Assembly: GCA_977017575.1 (NCBI GenBank)
Contig: CDRNVI010000015.1
Coordinates: forward strand, 310,001 to 374,000
Source: Paramoeba atlantica
Lineage: Eukaryota; Protista; Discosea
DNA length: 64,000 nucleotides
Direction: 5' to 3'
The notes beneath the pieces were generated by a model. That model did no database searches, had not been told where the DNA came from, and saw only the letters and a program-made list of their open reading frames with translations. Both the position numbers and the translations under genes were made by a program. Below, piece by piece: positions 6,821 through 63,205 of the stretch; the first letter of the stretch is position 1, and every line of letters begins with the position of its first letter.

Positions 6821-6922
6821 TGGCGTATTCGGAACGCTCGACTTGAAAGATTTAATCTGATGACAAAAAAATAATTTTTTTTTCTTGTGAAAATATGGCA
6901 ATTTTTTGTTTTTCCCCATTTT

Positions 6923-8044
6923 ATGCCTCAAAAGCGAGTTCGCTCAAGGACTTCCCGTGGTGTTTTGAGCGCACGCTCCTATGCCTCACCAGGGAAGATT
7001 AAGGAAAGTCACAGGATGCTTCTTGTGGCGGACTTTGAGAAAACAGAGTCTTATTCCCGGACTGCCCAAAATTTTGGTGTCCACGAGGGAACTGTGAAAC
7101 TCTGGGTGGAAAGATTTAATTGCACTGGCGACGTGGCCAGTCCATCCCTTACGCGTCAACCTAGGGTCACCACCTCTGATCTTATGAAAGTATCTTTAAA
7201 GCTTATTGATGACGCTTATCGTGACCTTCCTTATGGTATCTCCACTTGGAGCGAGCTCTGGAGAGAGGTAAAGCGACGTGGCTTCACATGTTCAATAACA
7301 TCCCTAAGGAACATGCTGAAAAACTCAAAAGAAAAAATTGTGCTCAGAACAACTTTAAAGACCCCTTTCTTATCTAATAATCATAAGGAGCGCAGAGTGC
7401 AATTAACCACTGAAATGCTACAGTGGAGCGACGCTGCGCTGGAAAATATTATTTTCTGCGACGAAAAAAAATTTACGTGCAAAAGATCCACCCGACCCAC
7501 GTACCTTTGCCGAAAGTCTGACCCCCCCAAAGAACAAACAGGGGAATTAGAACCCTATCATGGTGGAGAAGGTATTATGGTTTGGATGGGGGTGAGCTTA
7601 AAGCATGGGTTTCATTTACATGTCTTTCCTACCCATGATTCTCAAGGAAACAAAGTAACTGTAAAGGGACAAAATTTTTATGAAGCCATGAAAAAAAGGG
7701 GAGGTCTGTTCCAATATTTAAGGAGACATCGGGCCACAATAGTGATGGACAATTGCCCGGCACATAATAAGGCTCGTGCCGCGGCCCAAGAAAAGGGTTA
7801 TTCTTGGCTCCGATGGCCAGCACGATCCCCTGATCTAAACCCCATAGAAAATCTTTGGTCAATAATGGACGGGACAAAGGACCAAATTCAACCTAAAAAT
7901 CAACAACAATTACACTCCGCAATTCATGATTCCTATGATAAACTTAAGACAGAACAAATATCCAAATTTGAGAATACGCTAAAAAGCTTCAGAAAGCGTT
8001 GTAGAATCATTGTAGAAATGAACGGTGCACATTGCGGATACTAA
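6923..8044 (+). CDS. Tc1-like transposase (DD32E)
   Basis: N-terminal HTH (YSRTAQNFGVHEGTVKLWVERF), catalytic IIFCDEKKF, VMDNCPAH and WPARSPDLNPIENLW. First ATG at 6923; the ORF track starts at GTG 6887. Confidence 0.92.
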   Translation: MPQKRVRSRTSRGVLSARSYASPGKIKESHRMLLVADFEKTESYSRTAQNFGVHEGTVKLWVERFNCTGDVASPSLTRQPRVTTSDLMKVSLKLIDDAYRDLPYGISTWSELWREVKRRGFTCSITSLRNMLKNSKEKIVLRTTLKTPFLSNNHKERRVQLTTEMLQWSDAALENIIFCDEKKFTCKRSTRPTYLCRKSDPPKEQTGELEPYHGGEGIMVWMGVSLKHGFHLHVFPTHDSQGNKVTVKGQNFYEAMKKRGGLFQYLRRHRATIVMDNCPAHNKARAAAQEKGYSWLRWPARSPDLNPIENLWSIMDGTKDQIQPKNQQQLHSAIHDSYDKLKTEQISKFENTLKSFRKRCRIIVEMNGAHCGY

Positions 8045-31832: not shown

Positions 31833-33042
31833 CGCAACTCAAAAAAAAACATGTCAACAGTTTTTTTGCAATTTTGAAAAAACATATTTTTGGCGGAGAA
31901 CACTATATGCTTGGTCAAAGGGGCATAGCTCTTTCACTCTCTCTCAAAGGGGCATAACTCTTTCACTTTAAACTTAATTTTGGACTTATCCCTTAGTACT
32001 TCGTGACGCCCCCTTTCGCCTTGATTACAGCCTTCATTCGTCGAGGCATGCTTTCTACCACAGAGTAACATAGACTTTCTGGAATTTTAGCCCATTCTTC
32101 TTGGGCCCACTTCCAGAGTTCCAAAACTCCTGTTGGTGCGATGGAACGACCTGCAATCGCTCTTTTGATTCCAAATATTCTCAATGGGATTGAGATCGGG
32201 GGACTGCGGAGGCCACTCCAGAAGCGTGTACGACTCATCAGCAAAGAATTTCTTTGCCAATTTGCTCGTATGCTTCGGATCGTTATCCTGTTGAAAAATC
32301 ATACAATCTTTCTTCAGACCAAGGTCTTCTAGAGAATTTTCCAGATTGTCACGAAGAATGCGAACGTATTGTTCTGCATTCATGTTATCATCAACAAGAA
32401 CGATCTTCCCCACACCAGTAGGTGCCATGCAGCCCCATAGCATGATGGACCCCCCTCTGTACTTGACTGTCCCACGGGTGGTCCTGTCATTCAAACCTTC
32501 CCCTGGAGACTTGTAGACCCAATTGTCTCCCACATTCTCGAAGCGACAAAGTTTTGTCTCGTCCGACCATAACGCCTTTGACCAATCTGCGAAGGTCCAA
32601 TGCTGGTGTCGGAAAGCAAGCTTTAATCGCAGTTTCTTTTGACGGCGAGTCAACTTCGGCTTTTTTATACGTTTACCGGCTTGTAGCCCATTTGAACGCG
32701 GAGCATTGCGAACTGACTGGGGAGTTAAATTAATGATACGCTCTTCGCGGAGTCTCCGGCTTACAGTACCAGCGTTCTTTTCATCACCGCATACAATAAG
32801 AAGTTTCATGCGTCGAGAGCATGTCTCTGTGATTTTGCAGGGGCCGCCTTTTGATGTTTCTATATGTGAAAGATTTGTTTTGCTTATCTTAGAAACATAA
32901 CCTACGCTGAGCTTGTGTTCACCGCAAATTTGCGTACAGACTTTCCCAACTTAAGAGATTCAATGACTCTGGTGCGTATTTCGCGGGGTATTGATTTCAT
33001 TGTATAGTAAATTTAAAGTTTTAGTCCTAAGGTTCGTTTCCT
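31833..33042 (-). mobile_element. Decayed Tc1-family transposon (DD34E), 5' end rearranged
   Basis: Frameshifted transposase. Probable TIR TA|CGCAACTCAAAAAAAAACATGTC at 31831-33 and a 24 bp direct repeat at 31915/31944. No matching partner TIR seen. Confidence 0.8.
31993..33000 (-). pseudogene. Tc1 transposase with two frameshifts
   Basis: ATG at 33000 (MKSIPREIRTRVIESL), shift near 32930, WSDETK, MLWGCM, QQDNDPKH, WPPQSPDLNPIENIW, shift near 32170, then WAKIP...SMPRRMKAVIKAKGGVTKY. Confidence 0.9.
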
Positions 33043-38394: not shown

Positions 38395-38733
38395 AATATG
38401 CGAAGAAAACGTCCAGACAAACATGGTGAGACGCGTAGTAACGCACAAGAAATTACCGTAGATTTATTTTACTGTATAAGTATTTGTAGTACTGCGATTG
38501 CCTATTGAGACAGATGAACCTTCACAATACCATATACAGGAACATACGCAACAAGTTGTATATTCTAGTGTATATTGTGGTTAGTATAAAAGATATTACG
38601 TACAGTACGTAAAGACCTGCAATTACTCTGTACGTAAAGACCTGCAATTTTATTACTGTAGAGCACACGGCTGCCAATATAGTGCATCATTTACCTCTTG
38701 TATGTACTTGTCTCGCACTCTTTCCTTCTCAGT

Positions 38734-39873
38734 ATGAAAACACCTTTGCTTGCTCTCGGAAGCCTTCCTTCAAAAAAACGTAACCCCCTATGGAGGACAC
38801 GGAGGCATAGAAGCTTCTACCCCCAGCTTCCTTGGCTCATGACGAGTACACCGAATTTCATGGACAACGCTGAGCACCTCTACGGACGACGTGAGACCTG
38901 GGCTCGCCTCTACCAAAGTGACACCCCAGGTACCCCCAAAAATTGTCACAGGCTTGAGGACCCACTCCAGCTCATGCTGCAGTACATTGACTATCTGGAA
39001 GGGGAGTACAAGGAACTTTTCCGCCAATCCGAGCGGCTGGAACACAAAATTGCTGTCGCGGAGACTGTGTACGAAATGTGGCTCGCGAGAGCATTGAAAG
39101 AGGGTACCTACGTGCTACGCGAATGGCGCCACCCTCAAATCCCCCCACACGCGGAGTACATTCCCCTTCGTCTGCGACGACGACTCGAGGAACAACAAAG
39201 ATGTGAGGCGGAGGGACTTCCCCTTCCCCGGGGGTATGGTGCCACGCTGCGTCGGGAACTTGAGACCCGCACCCCGGCCGATGCTCCGGTTCCCCCCGAT
39301 GGCCCTGAACAAGAGGACCAGCTCTCGGGAAATCTACCCCACGACCCGTTGTTGGGGGCTGCACTGGCCCGAGAGGTTCCACCGGAGCCCAGTGAGATGC
39401 CGTTTCTACGTCGTCGTGTGATCTCTTCCCCCGACTCACTGCACCCTGCACTCGCGCGGTGGACGGAAAGGTGGTATCCAGAGGGCGATGATGGAATTAA
39501 ACCCCTTGCAGGAGCAGCTGCTCCCGGGGTCTCGCGTCGGGAGGAGACGCCCTACGACGCGAGCCTGGAGGACCCTCCCCGATCATCGTCTCGTGGGAGA
39601 GGAAAAGATGGTGAGCTACGCAAACAGCTCGTAGGCCGACGCGTGGAGAAACGCCCACCGGTGGCGAAAACACTTCATGAACTACGTTCGCGCACACCGA
39701 CATTTGATGCTACGCATACGTATCGTCAGAAAGGGGCACGGGATGCGCATTCCAGTGCCACAGCCGTCCGTGTGGACTGGGATACCCTCCGTCAGTCACA
39801 GGGGGACTCGAGCTATGACCGAAAACGTGCACAGGAACGGAAAATTCGACTGCAGCGTGGAGAAGGTGTATAG
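38734..39873 (+). CDS. Hypothetical protein (coiled coil, Pro/Arg-rich; possibly mitochondrial)
   Basis: ~380 aa ORF on the cluster strand with an Arg-rich N-terminus; no family recognised. Confidence 0.7.
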   Translation: MKTPLLALGSLPSKKRNPLWRTRRHRSFYPQLPWLMTSTPNFMDNAEHLYGRRETWARLYQSDTPGTPKNCHRLEDPLQLMLQYIDYLEGEYKELFRQSERLEHKIAVAETVYEMWLARALKEGTYVLREWRHPQIPPHAEYIPLRLRRRLEEQQRCEAEGLPLPRGYGATLRRELETRTPADAPVPPDGPEQEDQLSGNLPHDPLLGAALAREVPPEPSEMPFLRRRVISSPDSLHPALARWTERWYPEGDDGIKPLAGAAAPGVSRREETPYDASLEDPPRSSSRGRGKDGELRKQLVGRRVEKRPPVAKTLHELRSRTPTFDATHTYRQKGARDAHSSATAVRVDWDTLRQSQGDSSYDRKRAQERKIRLQRGEGV

Positions 39874-39989
39874 CGTTTATTTCTCTCTGCAGGATTCAAT
39901 AGCGATAAATCATTATCCATATTGATCGTTAATCCTTTTTCATATTCCATAATGGTCATTTTTTTAACTTTTCCCATTCACAACACGTA

Positions 39990-41070
39990 ACATACCCTAC
40001 CCACCTACCTCTTCTTCCGCCTTTTCACCCCTTTCCACTCTCTACCCCTCTCCCCCCCCCACCACCACCACCACCCTCCCATGGATTTCCTCCTCCACGG
40101 CACCTTCGTCACCCTCCACAAAACCCTCGAGACCCCGTTCAACCGCATCTGGTCCCTCTACCTTAACCAATCCGGTCTCCGTGCCGAGCACGCCCTCCCC
40201 CCCTCCCCCCCCCTCTCCCTCCCCCAAACCCTCTCCTACCTCCTCCACGCCCCCTCCGGCAAACCCCACGCCTTCTTCCACTCCACCCGGTTCGCCATCC
40301 TCGGCAACCTCACCCTCCCCTACGTGGGCTACGGGCTCCACCTGCTGTGGTCCGCCACGGGGCTCGCCCCCACCCGCCCGGCCCCCCTCCTGCTGCTACG
40401 GCTCACCACCGCGGTGGGCTCCACGCTGCTCGCCTACCCGCTCCACCTCATCCACTTCCGTATGCTTACGGACTTCAGCGACGCCCCCGTGGGGGCGTGG
40501 GCCACGGTGAGAGGGGTGTGGGCCCGGGAGGGGGTGCGGGGGCTGTACCGCGGGTGCGGGGTGAGTGTGCTCGGGGGGGTGGGGTACCGTGTGGTGTATG
40601 GGGCGCTGGCGAAGGGGGCGGAGAGGGGGCTGGGGGCGTACTACTATGGGGGAGGAGGGGGGGGAGGGGGGGAACAGGGGGGTGGGTTTCCCCTCAGTAC
40701 GACCACCGCGTTTGTGGTGCAGTACGGGTTGACGGTGGTGGCGGGGTTGGTGGTGTACCCGTTGGATGTGGTGCGGCGGAGGGCGATGTTGCGGGGTCGG
40801 GGAGGGGGGGAAGAGCGAAAGGGGGAGAGGGGGGAAGAGGGTGGGGGGAGGGGTAAGGAGGAGAAAAGACGGGTGGCGGAGATAGAGGCGAGGGCGGAGA
40901 CCCGCGCTGGGGGAGGTGGAAATGTCACCCTTGCGGTGGCTCGTGAGATGTGGCAGAGAGAGGGGATTGGGGCTTTCTGGGACCACGCGTTGGGGTCGGT
41001 TCTGAAATCGGTTTTACGGGGTGCGCTGATTCTGGCGTGGGATGTGTTAACGCATGATCTGCGGTACCAA
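39990..41070. other. C-rich to G-rich strand-skew inversion island
   Basis: + strand is almost G-free and C-rich from ~39990 to 40450, then G-rich from ~40490 to 41070. Third codon positions follow the flip. Confidence 0.9.
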
Positions 41071-41157
41071 GGGGATTCGGAGATTGAGCAAATTTTTCAA
41101 GAGGGAGAGACACATGAGGGGAAGCTGAAGGCAGCGAACGGGGATGTCTCAGTGTAA
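40081..41157 (+). CDS. Divergent mitochondrial carrier, ADP/ATP-carrier-like
   Basis: TPFNRI, YPLHLIHFRM, GLYRG and YPLDVVRRRAM (cf. the AAC RRRMMM motif); poly-Pro and poly-Gly/Glu inserts. Confidence 0.75.
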   Translation: MDFLLHGTFVTLHKTLETPFNRIWSLYLNQSGLRAEHALPPSPPLSLPQTLSYLLHAPSGKPHAFFHSTRFAILGNLTLPYVGYGLHLLWSATGLAPTRPAPLLLLRLTTAVGSTLLAYPLHLIHFRMLTDFSDAPVGAWATVRGVWAREGVRGLYRGCGVSVLGGVGYRVVYGALAKGAERGLGAYYYGGGGGGGGEQGGGFPLSTTTAFVVQYGLTVVAGLVVYPLDVVRRRAMLRGRGGGEERKGERGEEGGGRGKEEKRRVAEIEARAETRAGGGGNVTLAVAREMWQREGIGAFWDHALGSVLKSVLRGALILAWDVLTHDLRYQGDSEIEQIFQEGETHEGKLKAANGDVSV

Positions 41158-41466
41158 GAACGTGTGTTGCGAGTTTGTTTCAAATATAGAAAGTTTTTTT
41201 TGTAAATTAGTGTCTGAATAGAAAAGGTGAACAATATGTGACGAAGGTATTGCTTTCTACTGAAGTTTTGAGCTGAAGCCGCTGTCTTAGAGAACGAGAA
41301 TATTTGTTTTTGCAAGACTTTCTTTGGTAGTATCACTTGTTTTCATTGTGGCACACGAATCCATCATAGATTATTGCATAAGGCCCCTTAGTTTCGTATT
41401 TTTAGTTCGTGTTTCTGTCTTATTTCTTTTCAGCATTTTAACAAAGTTTCGGAATTCTTTTTGGAA

Positions 41467-44017: not shown

Positions 44018-45526
44018 ATGATTTTCTACTGCACGTTGACAAGGAGCGAGATGAAACCATTGAAGCTTGGTCGATTTGTTTATTCATTGTCGAGATTATC
44101 TCATGTGATACATGGATGTGACGCTCAGAAATTTGAAAAGGTACGTTGCTTCTCATCAAAAAGTGACAACGAATATAGTCGATACAGTAATCGAAAGGAT
44201 AGAGATTTTAAATATGCCCAAAGAAGACCCGGTGACTGGAAATGTAGTGCGTGCAACTCTATTAACTTTCGCTCAATAACAATTTGTCGCAGATGCGAAA
44301 AGCCTGTAAATAAAGACGATCTTCGCTGGAATAATGAAGATGGGTCTCCTTTCGTTGAACACAGAAACAGCTGGCCATGCCCTGTCTGTAATGTTTTGAA
44401 TAGGCAAGGGCGTATGCAGTGTTTCCGTTGCAATGAAAAAATTCCTAGGGAAATAGCGGCTCAATACAATTTCCATGATGGATCTTTCGTATGCACTCGA
44501 TGTCACGTTCTGAATTTTGCCGGAGCCGAATCTTGTAAGTTTTGCGGCGAGGCACCTCCAGCAGAGCTTAATTCAAGCGGCAATTCCGATCATCGCTTAA
44601 TTTTACAAAAGGCCAAATGGTTGTCCAAGTCTTGGAACTGGCAATGCCCCATTTGTGAATATCGCAATTTGAAATATCGGTGGGAATGCTACAAATGTCG
44701 TCATCAACGAGATGCCACTTGTGTGTACACGCCGAGTAACGAAGTTGGTGAGTATCCAGTGACCAGATTTCCAGGCTTACCGTGCGATTGGATATGTGGT
44801 GCATGTTCTAGGGTGAACTTTAAACATTCGAAAAAATGCACAAGGTGTAAGGCAGACAATGACTTAACTTCTCGAACTATTCCTTTGCCCGAGAGTGCGT
44901 ACTTTGGGGGACACAAGGATTATCGTCTCTCTATGGTCCTATTGCCTCCCGGTAGTTGGAGATGCGCCACATGTGAAGTTGTTAACGAACCAAGAAATAA
45001 GTATTGCCATCGATGCAAAAAGCGTACAGGAAATGATAGCAGAGTTTGCACTCTGTTGCAAGAATGGGGTGTAGGCGAGGCGGAAAGCCTTAATACGCTT
45101 AACTCATTGCGAAATATTATTAAGAAAACTGAATCTTTCATATCACAAGATTTGGATTCAGATTCTCTAGATTCGCTGAAAAATGGTCAGTCGTCTCATT
45201 CGTTATCTGACGGTGTGGTTACAGAGTCGAATTTAAGCGATTCTACTCTAGATACACGTGAGACTCGTATAAGAGTTGATACCGTTCCCGAGTACATGTC
45301 AGCAAGCTCAGCGCCACCACCGAGGTTTCCATTGTGGGAATGCAATGACTGTCACATGCACAATACATGCTTGAGATGTAGTTGTATTAGTTGCGGATCC
45401 CGATCTTCCCAACTACCTCCTCTTCCTGATGATTTCAAACACTGTTCCAAGTGCTCTCATGTTAACAACCGGGCGCGAATCAAATGTCTCCGCTGTACCG
45501 GTCTGGTGGAGGAAAAGAGACCATGA
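44018..45526 (+). CDS. Multi-RanBP2-type zinc-finger protein (8 fingers), mitochondrial-like N-terminus
   Basis: Eight W-x-C-x2-C-x3-N-x6-C-x2-C type units, e.g. GDWKCSACNSINFRSITICRRC. Confidence 0.88.
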   Translation: MIFYCTLTRSEMKPLKLGRFVYSLSRLSHVIHGCDAQKFEKVRCFSSKSDNEYSRYSNRKDRDFKYAQRRPGDWKCSACNSINFRSITICRRCEKPVNKDDLRWNNEDGSPFVEHRNSWPCPVCNVLNRQGRMQCFRCNEKIPREIAAQYNFHDGSFVCTRCHVLNFAGAESCKFCGEAPPAELNSSGNSDHRLILQKAKWLSKSWNWQCPICEYRNLKYRWECYKCRHQRDATCVYTPSNEVGEYPVTRFPGLPCDWICGACSRVNFKHSKKCTRCKADNDLTSRTIPLPESAYFGGHKDYRLSMVLLPPGSWRCATCEVVNEPRNKYCHRCKKRTGNDSRVCTLLQEWGVGEAESLNTLNSLRNIIKKTESFISQDLDSDSLDSLKNGQSSHSLSDGVVTESNLSDSTLDTRETRIRVDTVPEYMSASSAPPPRFPLWECNDCHMHNTCLRCSCISCGSRSSQLPPLPDDFKHCSKCSHVNNRARIKCLRCTGLVEEKRP

Positions 45527-45813
45527 GGTTGTTCGTCAAGTACAGAATACCGAAGTTATTAAATACATGCCAATGAAACATTGCGGGCACTTTTCCCTTT
45601 TAGATGAGTACAAGCAGCATAAAATTTGAGTGAACACGGCATATCTTTTGGTGGTCATGAATCCACTTGTAAATTGTTTATTTGTTTTACTAAACGTACC
45701 GAGATTCAATTTCTTTTCTACCTCCGGGCCTTAAGACGAATTCGGTGCATTGTTTTCTGTACCCTTTGTTTCATTTGTTTTTCTTAGAAGTTCTAAGAAT
45801 AAAAGCATAGTAA

Positions 45814-48321
45814 ATGTGGAGGAAAGCTGCTTATCGCACTGCATCGAAACTTTCCGACCTTCGGCACCCGATCACAACTAAGTCAGGTTGGGAATTCGAG
45901 CATGTAGGAATAGACATTCAGAACTACATCGAGATTTCAGTTTCAATTCACAAAGATGAATGGGCCAATACTGATAAAGATCAACAGAAACTATTGAATC
46001 AGACTAGTAGCTATGGGGTAGACGCTTTGCGAACACAAATTTTTGGTCTTGCGAAACCAACTAAATCAGTTGGTATATTTCTTGATGGTTCTCTTCCGCT
46101 TTGGTGCATTCGAAGTTTTCGCAGGGGTAAAAAATCTTACAAGTTGCAGCACTCACCAGGTTCAGAGCTTTTGGTGGCAACTGAATGCAAATTGGCAAGT
46201 GACATGAAGCGTCGGCTTCGGGAGCAAAATCGCTCTGTCGGTGAGATGGTTCTCTCAGGAACTCGCACGCCAGGATCCTTAGAGGGCAAAATGGCAGGTT
46301 GGTTTCAAGATTTGGTCGCTCGAGGAAGTGTTAGAAATGAACGAATAGCAATTATAGCTCAAGGAGCTCATCATTTTGCAACAATGATGGCAATGGTGCC
46401 ATTTCACAATATCAGCTTTCTTTCACTTGTGCAGCAAAACAGCTCACAGTTCTACTTTTATGACATGATGGAATACTTCGGACTATTAGAATACATGGAC
46501 TCGCCGGATCTCTCACGCATTCGTATTGATTTAACTTTTCTCATTATATTAACGTACGGAATAAGTTGGGCCCAGCTTAATGCCTTAAGCAATGTCTCTT
46601 TAAAGGACATCTTGGATAACTATCACCAAATATCTATCCCGAAACGGAAATTTCTTTTTACAGAAAGCTTAAAGCTTGACGTAAAAAACTTTAAATTAAT
46701 ACTCCCATCTAGTAAAGTGCAACGCCGAAGCATGGCTGACAATGTGTTGATAGTATGCAAAGAATATACGGAGATGTCTCTTCAAACACACCACACCTTG
46801 TGCACCGGACGCGTCTTAAATTATTATTACGTTCCAACAGAATATTTAAATTCCGAAAAACCACTAGCACTTGGACTCCAACATATTACAGCTTGGCTTG
46901 ATGGGGTAGACCAGCCGTATATTACTCCCACCGTTGATTTAAGACCCGCAATATCCGCCCTACACTTCGGAATATCTTGCATCGGTAGTGAGTTTGCGGG
47001 ATCATGCACAACACTGGGAAAATGGATGAAGGCGCATCCAGAACCTAAAGAGGCCTATGGCGTTTTTAAGCAATTAATTAGCCAAAGTGAAATTCCTGAT
47101 GTTCTTACAAAAGCAAACGATTTGATACAGACTTTAAAGCAACAAATTCCCCCAATCTTGCAGGAAACTCATAGAGCCAAGGTTTATTCTCGTATTTACC
47201 ACCATACTCGGGCATCAGCAACGAGCGATTCGTGCCGTCACGAATTTGATATCGGAGCCTTAAGCCAGTCTAAGAAAGGTTTGCGATACGTCCCACAGAC
47301 AGTCCCGATTGTGTTTGATCCCCTCTTGCGTAGGCAAGTCAAACTCCTGGTGGAGTACGACCCTTTTCAAAAGGTATGGGCCATGAAGAATTCGACTCAT
47401 GCTTTGTCATTGTCCACTCAAACCCATTTAAGCTCTTTGCGGTTTATTACTTGGAATGTTCTTTTTAACAAGTACAACAACGAAGACACTGTAATGGGAA
47501 AACCTGCAATTGATCGATGTTCTTCACAGAGATACGTTGCCATTGCGCATGAATTGAGTCAACGGAAAGCCGATGTTATAGCGCTTCAGGAAGTTATGCC
47601 AGAGTTTTGGGAATACCTTGCGAATCAGACTTGGGTGCGTGAGAACTACATTTTAACCTGTGATAAGAGCGGAACAGACATTAACCCATGGGGTATTTTC
47701 ATGATGTGTCACAAGCGACTAACGATAGCAGAAACAAATACGCACAATGTTCCAGGGTACAACGGGCATATTTGTCCTATGCCCGAAGTGGCAATATCAA
47801 TAAAGGGTGTTGGTCCAGAGGGTATTCTAAGAATCAGCTCCATCCATTTAAATTCTTCACTGAACGAGAACATGATATCCGTTCGCAAAACGCAAATTGC
47901 GAATTTCATGAAGCTATGCGATGAGAAACGTACCGGGATGCACTGCATTGTTGGCGGAGATTATAATCAGGAGTGGAGTATGCCATCAAATACCTACTTT
48001 CGAGATGCTTGGACCACGGCTGGCCTTTCAGAGCGCTCCGGGTGGACTATAGACAACGAACGAAATGGTTTATGCGCTCGATTGATTGAAGATCAATTCC
48101 AAGGTCGGTATGATAGAATCTTTTTTAGATCACCAGTTCTTCACCTAGAGGGCGCTAGCTTAATTGGCGATCGCAGTGTTAATGAAATTTTGGGATCACC
48201 TCCTAGTTCGCTTGCACCAAATATGACCTGGCCGGAATGGTTGTATCCATCGGATCACTTCGGGGTTGAGTGTTCTTTTTGCATTAATTTTCCTCGCGCC
48301 GGGAAGTTTAAAAAGGAATAG
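45814..48321 (+). CDS. KREX1/KREX2: Editosome exoUase KREX1/KREX2-type protein (degenerate XRN-like N-terminus + EEP nuclease)
   Basis: N-terminal FEHVGIDI, IFLDGSLP and SGTRTPGSLEGKM (XRN-N-like). C-terminal LRFITWNV, ADVIALQEV, IVGGDYN, RDAW, RYDRIFF and PSDHFGV. This fusion is the kinetoplastid KREX architecture. Confidence 0.8.
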   Translation: MWRKAAYRTASKLSDLRHPITTKSGWEFEHVGIDIQNYIEISVSIHKDEWANTDKDQQKLLNQTSSYGVDALRTQIFGLAKPTKSVGIFLDGSLPLWCIRSFRRGKKSYKLQHSPGSELLVATECKLASDMKRRLREQNRSVGEMVLSGTRTPGSLEGKMAGWFQDLVARGSVRNERIAIIAQGAHHFATMMAMVPFHNISFLSLVQQNSSQFYFYDMMEYFGLLEYMDSPDLSRIRIDLTFLIILTYGISWAQLNALSNVSLKDILDNYHQISIPKRKFLFTESLKLDVKNFKLILPSSKVQRRSMADNVLIVCKEYTEMSLQTHHTLCTGRVLNYYYVPTEYLNSEKPLALGLQHITAWLDGVDQPYITPTVDLRPAISALHFGISCIGSEFAGSCTTLGKWMKAHPEPKEAYGVFKQLISQSEIPDVLTKANDLIQTLKQQIPPILQETHRAKVYSRIYHHTRASATSDSCRHEFDIGALSQSKKGLRYVPQTVPIVFDPLLRRQVKLLVEYDPFQKVWAMKNSTHALSLSTQTHLSSLRFITWNVLFNKYNNEDTVMGKPAIDRCSSQRYVAIAHELSQRKADVIALQEVMPEFWEYLANQTWVRENYILTCDKSGTDINPWGIFMMCHKRLTIAETNTHNVPGYNGHICPMPEVAISIKGVGPEGILRISSIHLNSSLNENMISVRKTQIANFMKLCDEKRTGMHCIVGGDYNQEWSMPSNTYFRDAWTTAGLSERSGWTIDNERNGLCARLIEDQFQGRYDRIFFRSPVLHLEGASLIGDRSVNEILGSPPSSLAPNMTWPEWLYPSDHFGVECSFCINFPRAGKFKKE

Positions 48322-48861
48322 TTTGTTTTTTAAATAATATTTAAGCCACACTTCCTGTGTATGAACTATTAAGGAGAAATAGCTGACTCGATATCTCTTT
48401 AAATATGGGCCAAAAAAAGTTACGCAACCTTAAGTGTTCATTGTGAACAACGTACATGTATTTTCATCTGCTGATGAAGGATTATACAATTCACTTATGA
48501 TCAGAAGGAAACATCAACTGCGCTACAACATTAATACACTTTGAACCGTGCTGCGTGGGCGCAGCGTATTAGAATATTTTTGTCGCATTGTAACGCTACA
48601 TGATCAATTACGTGGCACTTTATACCTGTATGGATATTTATTTATTATATTGCGTGCCCATAGTTGTAAATTCTTCTAATTCTACGAATTTCGTTTAATT
48701 TTATCATAATCATACTCGTCTGGATACATTTTAATTTTTGGCGTTTTCATTATTGTCAAAGATGGAAGTTCGTTTAGGTTCACCTACATAAAAGAACTCA
48801 GCTATCCTAGAGGACCGGCAGAAATTGTAAAACGAATACAGTGCAATCGCATATTTAGGTC

Positions 48862-49740
48862 ATGTCGGATCCCATTCGCCGTGACCCGGGAGAATTTTTA
48901 CGCCAGTTAAAGCGCATGTGTTCGAATTCCCACTGGCAGAAAGCGATGTTCTTCGCTTCACGCGGTCGCATGATAGGATTTCAGCTTGATGTCCGACACT
49001 ACAACTTATGTCTCTACAGCCAAGCGGTATGGGGAAGGGCCCTTGAAATCGTACAACTCATTGACGCCATGAATCATGACAAGGTCAAGTTGGACGCTAG
49101 CAGTTACTACTACATCGTCAACGGTATGGCGAATGTGGATCACGGGTACTCGGCTGATTTTAACGTAAACCACCGTCTCGAGCGGCTACAGCACTGGCGA
49201 GTTGCCATCAATGCTTTGCTTGCGTGTGAGGCCAATGGTCATGAGCCCACCGCCACCATGTACAACAGTGCCATTGTGGCGTGTACCATCCCTACCATGG
49301 AGCGCTGGATGGAAGCTACCTACCTGTTTCACCGCTTACTGTCTGAGGAGCATAAACCTCATCCCCAGATGGTACAGAAACTGGAGCTTTGTTTGCTCCG
49401 AGCACGACGACCGTTTGATATTCAGCGCCTGCTGAATCTCGCAGTCACTCATCACACTCAAGGGTATCATACCCGGGAGTGTGTGGTGGGGGGTGGGCCT
49501 CGGGTGGCGCTGACCCCAGAGGAAGAGCAGGCGTACGAGGCGGAGTGCGATCTCCCGGCCTATGGTACCGGGGGGGTGCCGCTGCACGCTCACGGTATTT
49601 TCCGCCCCATGGTGTGGAGAGGGCTGTGGTGGCGCTGGCACGCGGTAGCGAATAAGTACCGCCCGCGACAGGCGCTGAAACGAAGGCAGCTCTGCCCGAG
49701 GTGGTCTCCTTCTGGGATTCCGGGGTGGAATAAGAAGTGA
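48862..49740 (+). CDS. Small pentatricopeptide repeat (PPR) protein
   Basis: 35-aa PPR-like units: LDVRHYNLCL..., LDASSYYYIVNGM, PTATMYNSAIVAC...WMEATYLFHRL. Confidence 0.8.
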   Translation: MSDPIRRDPGEFLRQLKRMCSNSHWQKAMFFASRGRMIGFQLDVRHYNLCLYSQAVWGRALEIVQLIDAMNHDKVKLDASSYYYIVNGMANVDHGYSADFNVNHRLERLQHWRVAINALLACEANGHEPTATMYNSAIVACTIPTMERWMEATYLFHRLLSEEHKPHPQMVQKLELCLLRARRPFDIQRLLNLAVTHHTQGYHTRECVVGGGPRVALTPEEEQAYEAECDLPAYGTGGVPLHAHGIFRPMVWRGLWWRWHAVANKYRPRQALKRRQLCPRWSPSGIPGWNKK

Positions 49741-49941
49741 GAACGGAAGGAGGGTGATCACTGTGATTGAATATTTATTTTATGGTATACAATACCGCAT
49801 TGTTTGCTTTTAATGACATACACGTACTACTTTGTTTTTTGTTCTTTTTGTCCAATAATTTTTTCCGCGTCCCATATATTTTCACGATAGATTTATTGGT
49901 ATTTTTCCCAGGATCTCCTCTACACCTTACCATATTAAGGA

Positions 49942-51198
49942 ATGACTGATCACATTAGAGTTCAATTCTGGACTCACTGCACGAATTATCGAATCGAGGA
50001 CAGCTCGAGTCGAACCTTTACGGTGCCTCCGAATGTACTCCCGGAAGGTCTTTCCGAACTTGTAGGTTCGCTTCTTTCCACTTCGGCAGTTCCAATGGCA
50101 TTCTTAATTGGGGGCACTCTGCTTACTACTGCGCTTGGGCAGTACCTGAGGGATCACCCAGAGGAGTCCACCCCGGAACATGTGATTCGGATCCAATACC
50201 TCCCGAAGTTGCATCCCGAAGTTACGGCCTCCATGCCGCAGGAGGACTGGGTGAGTTGCGTCCGTAGTGTATATCCGGCATCAGGATTATTCGCGACGGG
50301 ATCCTATGACTACATTGTGCGTGTGTGTCACATAGCCGCAAGCGGTTCCCAGGAGGTGGCACGCGGAGTAGCACACCAAGCCCCTGTCAAAGAGATTTGT
50401 GTTTTAAATGCGCCCGAGTCCCTTCAAGAGCATGTTGGAAAGGAACAACACGAGATGTTGTCCCGGCTGAAAGGTATGCAAATTGTTTCTGCCGTCCAAG
50501 ACGGCTCCGTCGGGTTGTGGGATTTTCCTTCCCAAAGTGCCTCTGAACACGAAACCTTGAAGACACCACTTTCACTTTCGTTGACCAGAGAATTTCGCTT
50601 TCACACAGAACCTGTCGAGACTGTGTGTAGCACTGGAGAGTCTAATCTAGTCGCCAGCGGGGGCTGGGACAACCAAATATGCGTGTGGGACCCTACCCGA
50701 GATTTCTTGGAACCACGAGTACGGCTCCAGGGGCATATACGCGCCGTAACAAAATGCGGTGCCTCCTTGCTTACAGGGTTGATCAGCACCTCCCTGGATG
50801 GTTCTCTTCGCCGCTGGGATATCGAAACAGGACAGTGTGCACTCACACAGCACTGTGGACACGCGGCGTATGGGATGGCTTGCCGTGGGGAGTACACTAC
50901 CACGGCGCATACCGACGCTAAGGTACGGCTTTGGGTCGGGCAAAGCCCTGACCCCACACACATCCTGAAAGGTCACACGAGATGGGTGTATAACGTTGCG
51001 TTTTATGGTGACAGTCATGTGGCGAGTGCATCCGAGGACGGGACGATTCGCTTGTGGGATGTACGCGTCCCAAATGAGCCTTTATCCATTCTGTCACATG
51101 TTCATGCAAATGGGGTGTTGGATGTAATCAATGCAGGCGAGGGCTTTATTGCTTCTTCTGGTAAAGATCATTTTATAAGAGTAACTCAAATAGGATGA
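49942..51198 (+). CDS. YTM1: Ribosome biogenesis WD40 protein Ytm1/WDR12
   Basis: N-terminal NLE/ubiquitin-like domain (FLIGGTLLTTALGQYL...EHVIRIQY), DWVSCV, TGSYD and seven WD-type repeats. Confidence 0.8.
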   Translation: MTDHIRVQFWTHCTNYRIEDSSSRTFTVPPNVLPEGLSELVGSLLSTSAVPMAFLIGGTLLTTALGQYLRDHPEESTPEHVIRIQYLPKLHPEVTASMPQEDWVSCVRSVYPASGLFATGSYDYIVRVCHIAASGSQEVARGVAHQAPVKEICVLNAPESLQEHVGKEQHEMLSRLKGMQIVSAVQDGSVGLWDFPSQSASEHETLKTPLSLSLTREFRFHTEPVETVCSTGESNLVASGGWDNQICVWDPTRDFLEPRVRLQGHIRAVTKCGASLLTGLISTSLDGSLRRWDIETGQCALTQHCGHAAYGMACRGEYTTTAHTDAKVRLWVGQSPDPTHILKGHTRWVYNVAFYGDSHVASASEDGTIRLWDVRVPNEPLSILSHVHANGVLDVINAGEGFIASSGKDHFIRVTQIG

Positions 51199-51535
51199 TG
51201 TCAATGTCGTATGTGCACGACATATAAGTCGATTTCTGTATTAAAACTATTCTTACTACGTTTCGCTGTATTTTATAATACAGAACTTTAAAAGTATCCT
51301 TACATGGGCTAGAAGAATATACATGTACTTCTTGGACAACTCCGTAACTGGTTAGTATAAATTTTTATTCTTCTAAGCCAACTACCATATTATCTAGTAC
51401 AGGCACTGATTTTTGTTTACCATGTCATGGCGCCACAGTGTTAATGTCTTAGTTTAAGACTCTTAAACACGCACCGATGCACCCTTGCACGAATCTGTAT
51501 TTTTGTGCTTAATTTTGGAAAGAAATGGAGTTCTG

Positions 51536-52561
51536 ATGAACATCGAGATGCGACACTATAACTTTATTTCCGTTTCCGAAAAGTGGTGCAAACTGTGTCA
51601 CGAACCCTATGCTTCTTGGAGATCCCACATCAGCGGAAGAGTTCAGTGCCACGCAACACTTGAAGATTTGTTTTACTCTTATACTACTTTGCATTTGCGG
51701 ACTTGGAAACCGCAACTGGTCTATCTTACCATAGGAATGAACCCACATAATATACTTTCTTTCCAGCAGGGGAAAAGAGTCAAATCGTCACGTACTTCAA
51801 CTAAAAAGAAATTTAATGCTACTTCTTCACATATTGTGGATAATAGGAAAGCACATGCTTTCAAAAGATACATGGGCGAAGAGATAAAAAATTCAAGTGT
51901 AGCTCCTGCGAATGAACGCTTTCAAAACCTTGATCACGGCAGGTTTAAACTATTATATAAAACGTATGACTTTGAAAGAGCTAATCACATGCACACTCTG
52001 TATAACTTGATTCTGCATCTGTATGTTAATAAGTGGCTTGCCGGTTGCATTTCGCAAGACACACGTGAACTAACTTTCCGCTCCCTCCATGGTTTAAAAT
52101 GTATAAATTATATACTTGTTAGAATTCTATGGGTTTTATTTTTGAGATCAGACACGGGGTCACTTAGCGTTACTCACCAACGCTGTGTCGACCCTTATAA
52201 CCTCGAAGTCGTCTTTGACAGTCTTCGTCTCGGATGTATTTTTCATTTGACGAAACAAACCCCGGAAGCGAAAGCTTATCAAGTTCGAGTGATTTACAGT
52301 GATATATATGGCTTACTCTTTTGGTACACCAAGGCGCCTATCTATATTCGAGAAATAGCTGAATACGTCCTAAAATCTCTATCCGCTTACGTGGTCGAAG
52401 TTCAAATGATTGAACTTAGCAATCGTGCTGATAGGGCTTGGAAAACTTTTGGTTGTCCAACAGAACCGAATACATTTTCCCTAACCCTACAAAACAGAAT
52501 AGGACGAAAAGAGGATGCAGAGATAGTGTTACGCTATCCCAAACTCTTTGAAACGCTTTAG
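51536..52561 (+). CDS. KREPB-family-like protein (U1-like zinc finger + degenerate RNase III)
   Basis: WCKLC...W..H......H finger followed by an RNase III-like helical block (...PYNLEVVFDSLRL...) lacking the catalytic E-x-x-GD. Confidence 0.6.
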   Translation: MNIEMRHYNFISVSEKWCKLCHEPYASWRSHISGRVQCHATLEDLFYSYTTLHLRTWKPQLVYLTIGMNPHNILSFQQGKRVKSSRTSTKKKFNATSSHIVDNRKAHAFKRYMGEEIKNSSVAPANERFQNLDHGRFKLLYKTYDFERANHMHTLYNLILHLYVNKWLAGCISQDTRELTFRSLHGLKCINYILVRILWVLFLRSDTGSLSVTHQRCVDPYNLEVVFDSLRLGCIFHLTKQTPEAKAYQVRVIYSDIYGLLFWYTKAPIYIREIAEYVLKSLSAYVVEVQMIELSNRADRAWKTFGCPTEPNTFSLTLQNRIGRKEDAEIVLRYPKLFETL

Positions 52562-52747
52562 CCAAAACAATAGTCATTAGAATATGATTAGGAATAAGTT
52601 AGTAACTAGAAATAACGTTTGGTTGAATGACGTTGTGCACTTTACGATTCCACTATAAATTATTTATAAATATATTAAGTATCTATAAATATAATAAGTA
52701 TATTTTTGTTTTTTACACCTAAATGTAGGTATACATGTATACCCAAT

Positions 52748-53860
52748 ATGCTGAAAACCCCACGTGTTTCTATAGCGGTAGGTCTAAAGGTTTGTGGACA
52801 ATGTTTTGCAATGCCTTGTACGCCACTGTTGTCTATGTATTCTGCCAATGTACGATACTTTTCGTCCAAAAAAATACTCATACCGAGCTCTCGTAGGGTT
52901 ATAAAACATTCAAATCCTTATCGTAATCGTCCATTCCCACACAAGCTTTTTTTAAGCATTTGCGTTAGCTGCGCTATCATTGGGGTTCTCATCGGTCAAT
53001 ATGCAGAAATTGATGAAAAAACTCTACCGAATGTATTCGTGAAAGAAGACATTGAGCAATCTCTTAAAGAGCATTTTGAATTCCGTCCGGATCTTGCTGC
53101 GGCGCTGATTCGATACGTCTACGTATACATTCTATTTCGAGCACTCGATATTCCTTCCGAGAAACTTCATGCACAGTTTCCTGGTTTACAAGACGCCGAA
53201 GATCTTATCGATACGTTGTGTCAAAGAAATATAATTTCATACGGAGACGCACTGACACTCGCAGCCGCATACGCCGTTACGTTTCTCCGCGGGCCGAAGA
53301 TTAACTGGCGTTGCGGACGTAAAGACAGCGCACGGGTACTTTATGAGTTGTCTCACACAGACTTACCTTCAAGTACGGGAAGTTTGGAAGCGTGGTTGAC
53401 TCTTTTTGAACGACTTGGATTTACACAAGAAGAGTTTGTAGCTCTCCTCGGGGCGCATACTGTTGGTACCGTACGCCATGCCGCAAATTTTCCTCTTCAA
53501 TGGACAGAAGATAAATATCGGTTTAATAATAGCTACTACAAAGTGTTGCGGGAAAAATTGTACAAGGTTCCAATTTATCCAGCGAGCGGCTTTCTTGTTG
53601 CGATATGCTCTCCAGGGGATATGCATAAAAAGAAATTGGCTGCTTTGCCTTGCGAAATTGCTATGATGAATAACCCGGTTACGAAGGGACTCGTCACACG
53701 TTTTGCAGAATCAGAGGAAGACTGGTTCGAGGTGTTCGGTATTTCCTTCATGAAACTTTGCGAGCTTGGTTGGGAGCAACAATCACTTAGAGAATACATT
53801 CCTTTTGGTAGCGCAGACGTTATACGAAACTATATTAAGAAACGGAATAGCACTTCATAA
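52748..53860 (+). CDS. Class I heme peroxidase-like protein (APX/CcP family), distal His absent
   Basis: ISYGDALTLAA, INWRCGRKD, FVALLGAHTVG, WT...FNNSYYKVL, WFEVFGISFMKLCELG. Basic presequence plus one TM segment. Confidence 0.85.
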   Translation: MLKTPRVSIAVGLKVCGQCFAMPCTPLLSMYSANVRYFSSKKILIPSSRRVIKHSNPYRNRPFPHKLFLSICVSCAIIGVLIGQYAEIDEKTLPNVFVKEDIEQSLKEHFEFRPDLAAALIRYVYVYILFRALDIPSEKLHAQFPGLQDAEDLIDTLCQRNIISYGDALTLAAAYAVTFLRGPKINWRCGRKDSARVLYELSHTDLPSSTGSLEAWLTLFERLGFTQEEFVALLGAHTVGTVRHAANFPLQWTEDKYRFNNSYYKVLREKLYKVPIYPASGFLVAICSPGDMHKKKLAALPCEIAMMNNPVTKGLVTRFAESEEDWFEVFGISFMKLCELGWEQQSLREYIPFGSADVIRNYIKKRNSTS

Positions 53861-61762: not shown

Positions 61763-63205
61763 ATGCTACGACACTTTTCCACAAACCGCCTCTCCTTTGA
61801 GGACTTAAACGACACTACGGAGGATTTCCTCCACGAACGCATCGCTCGCCGACCCTGTGTACTTGGACCCGGAACCGAATTCTTTCTCGATGGCAAACCC
61901 ATCGAACCCATGCTCAGCTCCGCAACCATCACCAAAGCCTTCAGTGGGAGTCACCTCGATTTAAGCGCCTTCAGTCCCGACCTCACCGACGACACCCTCG
62001 GCACCCCCGCCACCCCCCCACTCGGGTCACCCCCTTCCCTCACCCCTCTACGTCAAAACGACCCCTTCCGTTACCCCCACCCCCCCGACCCCCCCTCCCG
62101 TACCCCCGAAAAGCCCCACACCACCGCCGTCCTTGGGGCCCAAAACTACCTCGCGGGGTACACCATCCACGCCCTCCTTGAGCGCGGCCATGAGGTCCGG
62201 GTCATCGTCCCCGACCCCCCGACCCTCCGACGGCTGCGCCCCCTGCAGCAACGCGCCCGGGACGCCCACCGCCTCTCCCTCCACCTCCTCCCCGCCCCGG
62301 GCCCCGATGCGTCCTACGACGAGATCCTCTACGGGGTCGACACCGTGTTCGTTGTCCAGCACGCCGGGGCCGCCCACCTCCCCTCCCCCGGGGCCCTCGA
62401 GGCGTTCACCCGGGTCGTCGGGTCCCTCCGGCGGTGCAGGGAGCCCTCCCAGAGGGACCCGCGGCGCGTGGTGCTGACCGGGCCCTCGGTGAGTGCCGCG
62501 GGGGGGCGTCCGGGGACCGGGGAGGGGGGTGAGGGTCAAACGGTGTGGGAACCGTTCGAGGAGGTCGCGGCGGAGGCCCGGGTGGAGTGGGTGAGACTAC
62601 AGCCCGGGTTGGTGATTGGACCGGTGGGGTGGGGGGATGTGGCGGATGCGACGAGGGTGGTGGAGGATTTGGTGGTGGGTTCGGGGGGGTTTCCGTTTGC
62701 CCCGCGGACGGTGTGGAATTTTGTGGATGTGCGGGATTTGGCCGCGGCGAATGTTGCGGCGATGGAGAGTGCGCGGGTGGTACCGTACGCTTCGGTGGTG
62801 GGGGCGACGTTGACGTTGCCCCAGATTGGGCGATTTCTTATTCAGCTCTACCCCTCGTTGCGCCCCCCTACCAGGGATGCGCCTCATTGGCTTACGATTG
62901 TGCTCACGCTGTGGCGTCACCCCCGGACGAACCTGCGACGGTTGTGGCACAGTCTCGACAATCACCCCTCTGGTCTCGAGGAATCGGAGCAAAAAGATCT
63001 TTGTGTGCGCTATACCCCTTGGCAGCGTACAGTGGAGGATATTGTAGATCAGTTGGTAGCGGAGGAGCTGCTGGTAGTTTCGCCGGAATCCACGAGTTCG
63101 TGGAGTTTTGCGTCGTATGGTGCCGGCATCGCAGCCATTCTTGGAGTGTTGTGCGGTGGTTGGAAGTTTTTAAACTGGCGCAGAAAATATGTGAAATCTG
63201 ATTAA
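61763..63205 (+). CDS. NAD-dependent epimerase/dehydratase (DFR-like extended SDR) homolog with C-terminal TM anchor
   Basis: AVLGAQNYLAGYTIHALLERGHEVRVIV, GVDTVF, RRVVLT, LQPGLVIGP and FVDVRDLAAANVAAME; the catalytic YxxxK is not evident. Confidence 0.75.
   Translation: MLRHFSTNRLSFEDLNDTTEDFLHERIARRPCVLGPGTEFFLDGKPIEPMLSSATITKAFSGSHLDLSAFSPDLTDDTLGTPATPPLGSPPSLTPLRQNDPFRYPHPPDPPSRTPEKPHTTAVLGAQNYLAGYTIHALLERGHEVRVIVPDPPTLRRLRPLQQRARDAHRLSLHLLPAPGPDASYDEILYGVDTVFVVQHAGAAHLPSPGALEAFTRVVGSLRRCREPSQRDPRRVVLTGPSVSAAGGRPGTGEGGEGQTVWEPFEEVAAEARVEWVRLQPGLVIGPVGWGDVADATRVVEDLVVGSGGFPFAPRTVWNFVDVRDLAAANVAAMESARVVPYASVVGATLTLPQIGRFLIQLYPSLRPPTRDAPHWLTIVLTLWRHPRTNLRRLWHSLDNHPSGLEESEQKDLCVRYTPWQRTVEDIVDQLVAEELLVVSPESTSSWSFASYGAGIAAILGVLCGGWKFLNWRRKYVKSD
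61970..62850. other. Second C-rich to G-rich strand-skew inversion island
   Basis: C-rich from ~61970 to 62430, G-rich from ~62490 to 62850, inside the epimerase-like CDS. Confidence 0.88.

Follow-up and report, generated by a model that had tools for sequence, protein, structure and literature searches.

Skew jumps at the bacterial replication origin oriC and at human origins run from C to G, and the kataegis-type clusters around resected breaks show a strand-coordinated C-to-G switch, in which single events remove C from the single-stranded 3′ tail. In Trypanosoma brucei, the only kinetoplastid with an origin map resolved by strand, the origins found by stranded SNS-seq (short nascent strand sequencing) are intergenic and carry G-quadruplex (G4)/purine tracts on the plus strand upstream and on the minus strand downstream, that is, on the leading-strand templates (PMC13179062). 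CpG-island promoters with R-loops are GC-skewed, and downstream of the start their skew follows the direction of transcription (PMC3787257). Hotspots of GC-biased gene conversion (gBGC) are known from yeast, mammals and birds; in yeast, conversion tracts have a median length of 1.0-1.3 kb (PMC3649680), and runaway gBGC in gerbils provides a precedent for rewritten proteins (PMC7403616). Here, we describe a compositional island in a stretch of 64,000 nt from the Paramoeba atlantica assembly GCA_977017575.1 (contig CDRNVI010000015.1, positions 310,001 to 374,000; hereafter the window, position 1 being its first letter), in which the + strand turns from extremely C-rich to extremely G-rich inside an intact gene for a mitochondrial carrier. 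Hotspots of gBGC, origin skew switches and GC-skewed CpG-island promoters are its closest known counterparts, and the island departs from each of them in at least one defining property. We propose that it is the evolutionary footprint of a DNA-level process anchored in ~300 nt around position 40485, with a reach of ~500 nt per side.

The window has an overall GC content of 43%, so the phrase "AT-rich genome" in the initial annotation of this DNA is only moderately true; across 39990-41000, the composition profile shows a GC content of 0.62-0.74. GC skew ranges from -0.76 to -0.57 at 39900-40400 and from +0.54 to +0.66 at 40500-41000, and its sign changes at ~40485. Specifically, the C:G ratios of successive 50-nt bins over 40401-40550 are 25:11, 17:16 and 10:29, placing the switch in the 40451-40500 bin, within the intact open reading frame (ORF) 40081-41157. 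GC content reaches its maximum of 0.74 around the flip and declines over ~500 nt on each side, and skew is back to ~0 within ~600 bp on the left and ~800 bp on the right. The island and its host gene comprise the following parts:

39985-40080, + strand: presumed 5′ untranslated region (UTR) of the carrier gene, i.e., the 96 nt preceding the ATG, C-rich and nearly without G (base counts: 56 C, 2 G), with a (CCA)5.7 repeat at 40059-40075 reported by Tandem Repeats Finder (TRF)
39990-40480: left arm, C-rich and G-poor on the + strand by composition, holding all minus-strand G4 motifs of the island (40193-40231 and 40367-40387)
40081-41157, + strand: coding sequence (CDS) of a divergent ADP/ATP-carrier-like mitochondrial carrier (Pfam Mito_carr), 358 aa, intact
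40481-40498: flip point, holding a perfect inverted repeat of 8 bp whose halves are 2 nt apart (local p ~0.02)
40499-41000: right arm, G-rich and C-poor on the + strand by composition, with four plus-strand G4 motifs between 40513 and 40853
41001-41290: tail of the right arm, with GC ~0.4 and C still depleted (skew +0.4); the shortage of C, with GC no longer enriched, extends past the stop codon into the carrier 3′ UTR, to ~41290

In the carrier ORF, C occupies 74% of the third codon positions before 40480 and G occupies 70% of those beyond it, against a background of 19% each, which bears out the earlier statement of a change from C to G at ~40470; codon positions 1 and 2 are likewise skewed, so that all three positions are shifted. 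Together, the skew, codon-position and 5′-flank counts confirm a C-rich and then G-rich island within the gene, with a bias that starts upstream of the ATG.

The island is carried by the contigs of several samples and by an independent assembly. Logan contigs of samples X1 and X2 each span the whole stretch, short X4 contigs match within both arms, and an independent ENA assembly (L004) is 99.6% identical across 22 kb, with the island present; support from sequencing runs refers to assembled contigs throughout. A 2015 run of another study contributes a 425-nt contig over 40863-41287, outside the GC-rich core. This contig, possibly derived from RNA, ends ~130 nt past the carrier stop codon, and its end may mark the carrier poly(A) site. 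GC-rich homopolymer runs are hard to sequence, and the short-read X4 contigs are broken up across the island, as an assembly or sequencing artefact would have it; however, two long contigs of different samples cross the island, the independent assembly agrees, and the reading frame and the orthologue alignment run uninterrupted through both arms, leaving a negligible chance that the island is not real. At the C-run tract 40190-40225, other X1, X2 and X4 contigs match partly and then run into different C-rich sequence; these contigs probably represent left arms of further islands at other genomic sites.

To resolve which substitutions built the arms, codon classes were separated and the three strong islands of the locus (the other two are listed below) were pooled. 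Base frequencies at four-fold sites (A/C/G/T) and the percentage of C at two-fold pyrimidine-ending (Y) sites were as follows:

Four-fold sites, left arms:.02/.75/.18/.05
Four-fold sites, right arms:.04/.15/.76/.06
Four-fold sites, background:.28/.19/.18/.36
Two-fold Y sites: 95% C in left arms, 41% in right arms, 40% in the background

Farther than 150 nt from the flip, the right arm has four-fold C at.07 and four-fold T at.07, and its two-fold Y sites are only 24% C (background 40%). Low T at four-fold sites, together with two-fold Y sites that are not enriched in C, means that T of the right arm was lost by T->G and not by T->C. At the same distance in the left arm, four-fold G is.10 and four-fold A.02, with two-fold purine-ending (R) sites at 57% G (background 37%, p =.07); by symmetry, left-arm A was lost by A->C. 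Within 150 nt of the flip, the off-drive G or C accounted for 75% of sites (21/28), vs 40% (17/42) distally (p =.007). The distal arms thus gain one base each, by A->G and T->G on the outgoing strand, and a central zone of ~300 nt is exposed to both polarities. Four-fold sites and UTRs are hit hardest and the skew is not confined to non-synonymous positions, which upholds the initial annotation in setting protein selection aside as the cause; a local strand-asymmetric source centred on the switch, which it had proposed, is the simplest reading.

This codon-class spectrum indicates a two-sided 5′->3′ process; neither strand-blind gBGC nor a general bias of mutation from AT to GC can produce it. 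Ordinary gBGC would explain a GC peak of ~1 kb over silent and replacement sites alike, with both G and C raised within 150 nt of the centre, and the resemblance to known hotspots, including those affecting gerbil genes (PMC7403616), goes further: a kilobase-scale GC peak, overridden codon usage, fixed amino-acid changes, lineage specificity and a width comparable to conversion tracts (PMC3649680). It does not account for right-arm Y sites that stay at the background level overall and fall below it distally, for the low four-fold C of the distal right arm and four-fold G of the distal left arm, or for skew of up to 0.6-0.76. Known gBGC is strand-blind (weak to strong bases), whereas the islands gain one base per arm, require T->G and A->C transversions and have a central skew flip; an origin by strand-blind conversion or mutation bias is therefore scarcely credible.

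Next, we found that the island is not unique. Three strong islands occur in the ~91 kb read, all with the C-to-G polarity (3/3) and all ~1 kb in total width, and weaker islands share the sign. Their positions are:

61790-62470: left (C-rich) arm of the second island, within ORF 61763-63205, which encodes an NAD-epimerase-like protein (orthologue P0122 of Papus ankaliazontas PhM-4)
62471-62830: right (G-rich) arm of the second island
1-120: end of the right (G-rich) arm of the third island, with the ATOM40 stop codon at 42-44 and the G-richest part in the 3′ UTR (G12 run at 69)
38698-39873: weak island of the same polarity in the ORF next to the carrier, with a GC content at third codon positions (GC3) of 0.55 and four-fold C:G changing from.31:.12 to.22:.30
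48862-49740: weak island of the same polarity, GC3 0.64, with third-position skew changing from -0.18 in the first half to +0.40 in the second
434-1303: ORF with a weak GC-rich island and a C-to-G trend at third positions

The body of the third island precedes the window and lies in ATOM40 (L006, a contig of a second strain, 9050-9800, with the left arm at L006 9050-9450); this island covers only the 3′ part of ATOM40 and the UTR. The weak islands suggest a continuum of island strength or age. Among 29 ORFs, GC3 correlates with the half-to-half change in third-position skew (Spearman.48, p =.009), and all five ORFs with GC3 >=.55 change in the positive, C-to-G direction. The initial annotation would have been undermined by islands that are rare or random in polarity, and across the ~91 kb they are neither (3/3 strong islands, 5/5 high-GC3 genes). 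Upstream, the second strain's contig (L006-L008, 27 kb) contains no island other than that of ATOM40. At L008 8600-9500, there is a stretch of 900 nt with no ORF, a GC content of 0.35-0.54 and an excess of C (skew -0.3 to -0.44), which has no G-rich partner arm.

The flips fall at 0.38, 0.49 and 0.85 of the CDS, and a flip tied to the gene midpoint was rejected on these values. Since the flip varies in position within the CDS and the arms reach into UTRs, the anchor is positional and not a gene landmark. No shared motif was found at the three flips beyond G and C runs. The hexamer GGTGAG (in frame GTG|AGN) does occur 15-20 nt to the right of each flip (40503-40508, 62486-62491 and L006 ~9465-9470), probably by chance, as it appears about once per 100 nt in the right arms.

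The perfect 8-bp hairpin at 40481-40498, noted from the start, is exact (40481-40488 paired with 40491-40498), and stems of 8 bp were reached by only 2% of local-composition shuffles; nothing comparable exists at the flips of the other two strong islands, where the best stems measure 5 and 7 bp. A hairpin or cruciform could in principle convert itself, with the arms pairing within one strand and mismatch correction yielding complementary C and G runs. Such self-templated conversion would give N->C and N->G whatever the starting base, and it agrees with the sharp flip of island 1, with growth outward from a loop and with the hairpin found there. However, it predicts no preferred polarity, whereas the observed polarity is constant, it finds no hairpin at the other two flips, and the in-register complementarity that it predicts is absent; we regard it as highly improbable. 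The island is not a true palindrome or foldback, as its inverted repeats are only slippery matches between C runs and G runs.

Selection on RNA was considered as well, favouring an mRNA with much C in its 5′ half and much G in its 3′ half, for example to form a giant hairpin or bind protein. Selection for a given base would also produce N->C and N->G, island 1 roughly matches the extent of the mRNA from 5′ UTR to 3′ UTR, and the predicted minimum free energy is -0.51 kcal/mol/nt, vs -0.25 in control genes, with 261 pairs across the flip. The long C:G stem that had been envisaged for the transcript is thus predicted, but it is a by-product of composition: block shuffles that keep the local composition fold nearly as well (z = -2.2; 275 cross-flip pairs vs 261), and the inverted repeats are no better than the slippery matches described above. 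In addition, the position of the flip within the CDS varies, island 3 is limited to the 3′ part of a gene and its UTR, the GC peak at the flip resembles a decay profile, and the island RNA has no match in Rfam. RNA-level selection is accordingly very unlikely.

A fixed bidirectional replication origin at the flip is a further candidate, where the outgoing strands would become G-rich through leading/lagging asymmetry, or through dC insertion after bases have been lost from the lagging-strand template. The C-to-G flip matches the polarity at bacterial oriC and human origins, the two-sided geometry is the same, and the sign fits the classical leading-strand G excess. The outgoing strands would be the lagging-strand templates, where abasic sites and dC insertion in the manner of Rev1 would yield N->G; the spacing of strong islands in the DNA read is 20-40 kb; and canonical G4 motifs of the window are almost confined to islands, with + strand motifs in right arms and - strand motifs in left arms. 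The same G4 arrangement, minus-strand on the left and plus-strand on the right, is nevertheless opposite to the G4/purine polarity of mapped T. brucei origins (PMC13179062), and the islands are intragenic. Replication skew should also last to the next terminus, whereas here it decays within ~600-800 bp, and replication asymmetry leaves both the 74% GC peak and the fixation of harmful amino-acid changes unexplained. Compared with origin skew switches in general, the islands have a far larger amplitude, a reach of ~0.5 kb per side instead of a replicon, GC enrichment and an intragenic position. The origin analogy drawn in the initial annotation thus keeps its C-to-G sign and is weakened by the opposite T. 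brucei polarity (PMC13179062) and by the loss of skew within ~600 bp, and we consider an origin unlikely.

We then asked what the island has done to its host. The carrier is a functional gene under purifying selection, because four of the five single-nucleotide polymorphisms (SNPs) that separate strains within the island lie at third codon positions and because frame and orthologue alignment are continuous through both arms; a single 2-nt indel is the only other difference between strains in the island. In island 1, to which the polymorphism data are limited, the excess of transversions (4/5 vs 27/80) reaches only p =.057. Compared with L004, the segment 31468-44284 has 92 strain differences (~7 per kb) and the next 9.3 kb (44285-53617) has none, which looks like a boundary of a shared haplotype, or of loss of heterozygosity, near 44.3 kb. 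The protein matches Pfam Mito_carr (PF00153) with E = 2e-16 and 59.9 bits over 2/3 repeats, vs 233.7 bits for a neighbouring carrier. Orthologues were retrieved by an exhaustive HMMER search, as a word-based search was swamped by low-complexity words, and in the alignment P0137-P0140 and P0145 share 16 invariant columns with the carrier, including the P-x-D-x-x-R-R motif. The carrier resembles known ADP/ATP-carrier-like mitochondrial carriers in its Mito_carr match, its N-terminal helix motif and P-x-D-x-x-R-R-R, and it has orthologues in environmental kinetoplastid-like contigs; it differs in ~47 added low-complexity residues, a doubled Gly content and one undetected Mito_carr repeat. The poly-Pro and poly-Gly tracts described before are present, as a Pro-rich tract and Gly runs, and 47 residues of the right arm align opposite gaps in P0137. 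Two insertions missing in the orthologues were delimited:

40642-40692, + strand: G-run low-complexity insertion encoding a Gly run (alignment; TRF 40648-40672)
40799-40910, + strand: purine-only (G/A) insertion of ~30 codons for Gly, Glu, Arg and Lys (alignment; 23-nt tandem units by TRF)

Public gene calls are wrong at the islands because the GC-rich sequence leaves several frames open. At L004 8537-9691, the carrier is mis-called as a minus-strand piece of 112 aa, an out-of-frame piece of 169 aa and the C-terminal 94 aa (P0136), and at L006 8790-9593 the public call puts a minus-strand protein of 267 aa in place of ATOM40.

The window is a prokinetoplastid polycistronic array: all ORFs of at least 240 aa are on the + strand except one for a DDE transposase, the ABCF3 tree places the window as sister to the Perkinsela clade (support 100/99), and the second island's gene has its best match in Papus ankaliazontas PhM-4. 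The exception is:

32087-32809, - strand: DDE_3 (Tc1-like) transposase ORF, the only sizeable minus-strand ORF near the island

Another DDE_3 (Tc1-like) transposase ORF lies at 6887-8044, and this relative of Perkinsela carries DNA transposons.

The DNA read from relatives lacks such islands. The DNA encoding P0137 (L005, from an environmental kinetoplastid with a same-strand gene array), the one carrier orthologue whose DNA was read, shows none, with a GC content of.48-.59 and an absolute skew <=.3, and three 22-kb loci of the Perkinsela clade (L001-L003) contain no windows of strong skew. An approach by synteny through ABCF3 did not reach the carrier orthologue in these loci, which have different neighbours. 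The second island's gene is 62% identical to its PhM-4 orthologue ahead of the island and 26% identical within the left arm, and the Pfam epimerase signal is lost. The island, being unshared with relatives and eroding proteins, needs either a fixation bias or a very strong local mutator.

The array organization bears on one more explanation, namely a zone resembling a CpG island where RNA polymerase II initiates divergently, or an R-loop/G4 zone, with a G-rich non-template strand in both directions, kept by functional selection or produced by damage to the displaced strand, possibly through excision of base J or hydroxymethyluracil (hmU) that gives T->G. The geometry is that of GC-skewed CpG-island promoters and terminators with R-loops, including a GC-rich extent of ~1 kb, a G-rich strand co-oriented with outward transcription and G4/R-loop potential (PMC3787257), and G4 motifs lie on outgoing strands only. 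In so compact a genome, where spacers beside the carrier measure ~200-300 bp, a 1-kb element must overlap a CDS, and the imperfect match of left and right arms might stem from sense transcription of the array superimposed on the main process. On the other hand, nothing indicates initiation inside these genes, and R-loops of T. brucei are intergenic and not dictated by positive GC skew (PMC6294496). The ratio of observed to expected CpG is 0.7-1.15 in the islands and 1.01 in the whole window, i.e., ~1 everywhere, with no local CpG excess and no methylation logic. Simple deamination of a displaced strand would raise T, and no such rise is seen. Keeping such an element by selection, at the expense of conserved enzymes, seems costly. 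The islands are also set apart from such promoters and terminators by their place inside the CDS of polycistronic arrays and by a several-fold stronger skew, and an initiation or R-loop zone appears doubtful.

We tentatively favour a fixed recurrent break or recombination hotspot with strand-polar, G-favouring repair, a reading that we rate as plausible but somewhat short of probable. Composition, substitution spectrum, polarity, recurrence, absence from the orthologue's DNA and the intact gene are observed; from these we infer the break, the repair pathway and the enzymes. In the proposed mechanism, A and T would be replaced by G on the strand that runs 5′->3′ outward (equivalently, by C on the inward strand), in a process working against purifying selection on the carrier protein. 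A double-strand-break (recombination-initiation) hotspot, fixed and recurrent, would sit at the centre. Resection (5′->3′) and synthesis-dependent repair would leave an outgoing strand that is the new, donor-derived copy, paired with the old 3′ tail; mismatches would normally be restored to the old strand, except G.T and G.A, which would be resolved toward G, so that only G on the outgoing strand would be preferentially transmitted. Over generations, this may produce the C-left/G-right polarity, the central GC peak, a reach the size of conversion tracts and the fixation of mildly harmful replacements, and a start point wandering inside a hotspot-sized zone could explain the rise of both G and C at the centre.

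Several observations are consistent with such a hotspot. The distal codon-class pattern (Y sites 24% C and four-fold T.07; R sites 57% G and four-fold A.02) is exactly what the model predicts, and the island width is comparable to the yeast conversion tracts (PMC3649680). The model also accounts for Y sites left as they were and for C that stays about level. Heteroduplex mismatches would be available, since two haplotypes exist that differ at 0.4-0.7%. The kataegis-type clusters share the bipolar, strand-coordinated pattern that switches at a break, at a kilobase scale set by resection; they differ in that the 3′-tail strand of the islands gained C, cumulatively over evolution.

Other points weigh against the hotspot. 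There is no direct evidence of breakage or recombination at the island: in the comparison of two haplotypes, its SNP density (~6 per kb) is not above that of the flanks (~7 per kb), and the nearest haplotype-sharing boundary, at ~44.3 kb, is 3 kb off. Hotspots in coding sequence are unusual, and neither sex nor meiosis is known in the organism. The basis consists of three strong islands only. Two-fold R sites of the whole left arm are enriched in G (72%, p = 1e-4), whereas right-arm Y sites are not enriched in C (41%); the mirror symmetry of the arms is imperfect (p =.016), and the model needs the argument of a central overlap. Finally, yeast gBGC has been ascribed to mismatch repair and a base-excision model rejected (PMC3649680), so the enzyme scheme above is our own and has no precedent.

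Stated more broadly, the islands may reflect an as yet undescribed polar "G-capture" at fixed chromosomal sites, in which A and T turn into G on the leaving strand within ~500 nt and which would have rewritten about one gene in 6-20; we hold this to be possible without calling it likely. Candidate routes include a strand-resolved bias in repairing G.T and G.A mismatches, or dC insertion after bases (possibly base-J intermediates) have been lost. That the underlying enzymology is itself new is a conjecture we would give less than even weight.

No published description of such islands was found in the literature on kinetoplastid skew and origins, on the Perkinsela and Ichthyobodo genomes and on skew at recombination hotspots, and we regard them as a new strand-polar form of recombination- or initiation-associated compositional footprint. 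Their practical effect is that they break gene callers, as with the carrier and ATOM40 in public assemblies, and obliterate Pfam signals; phylogenies and dN/dS tests based on affected genes will be misled as well. If the islands mark fixed sites of breakage, origin firing or initiation, they would offer a map of a basic DNA transaction, read from sequence alone at near base resolution, in a deep-branching kinetoplastid without functional genomics. In that case, they would also demonstrate that a strand-polar bias in repair or transmission can overwhelm coding constraint on a tenth or more of the genes, an extreme case in the debate on non-adaptive forces in genome evolution.

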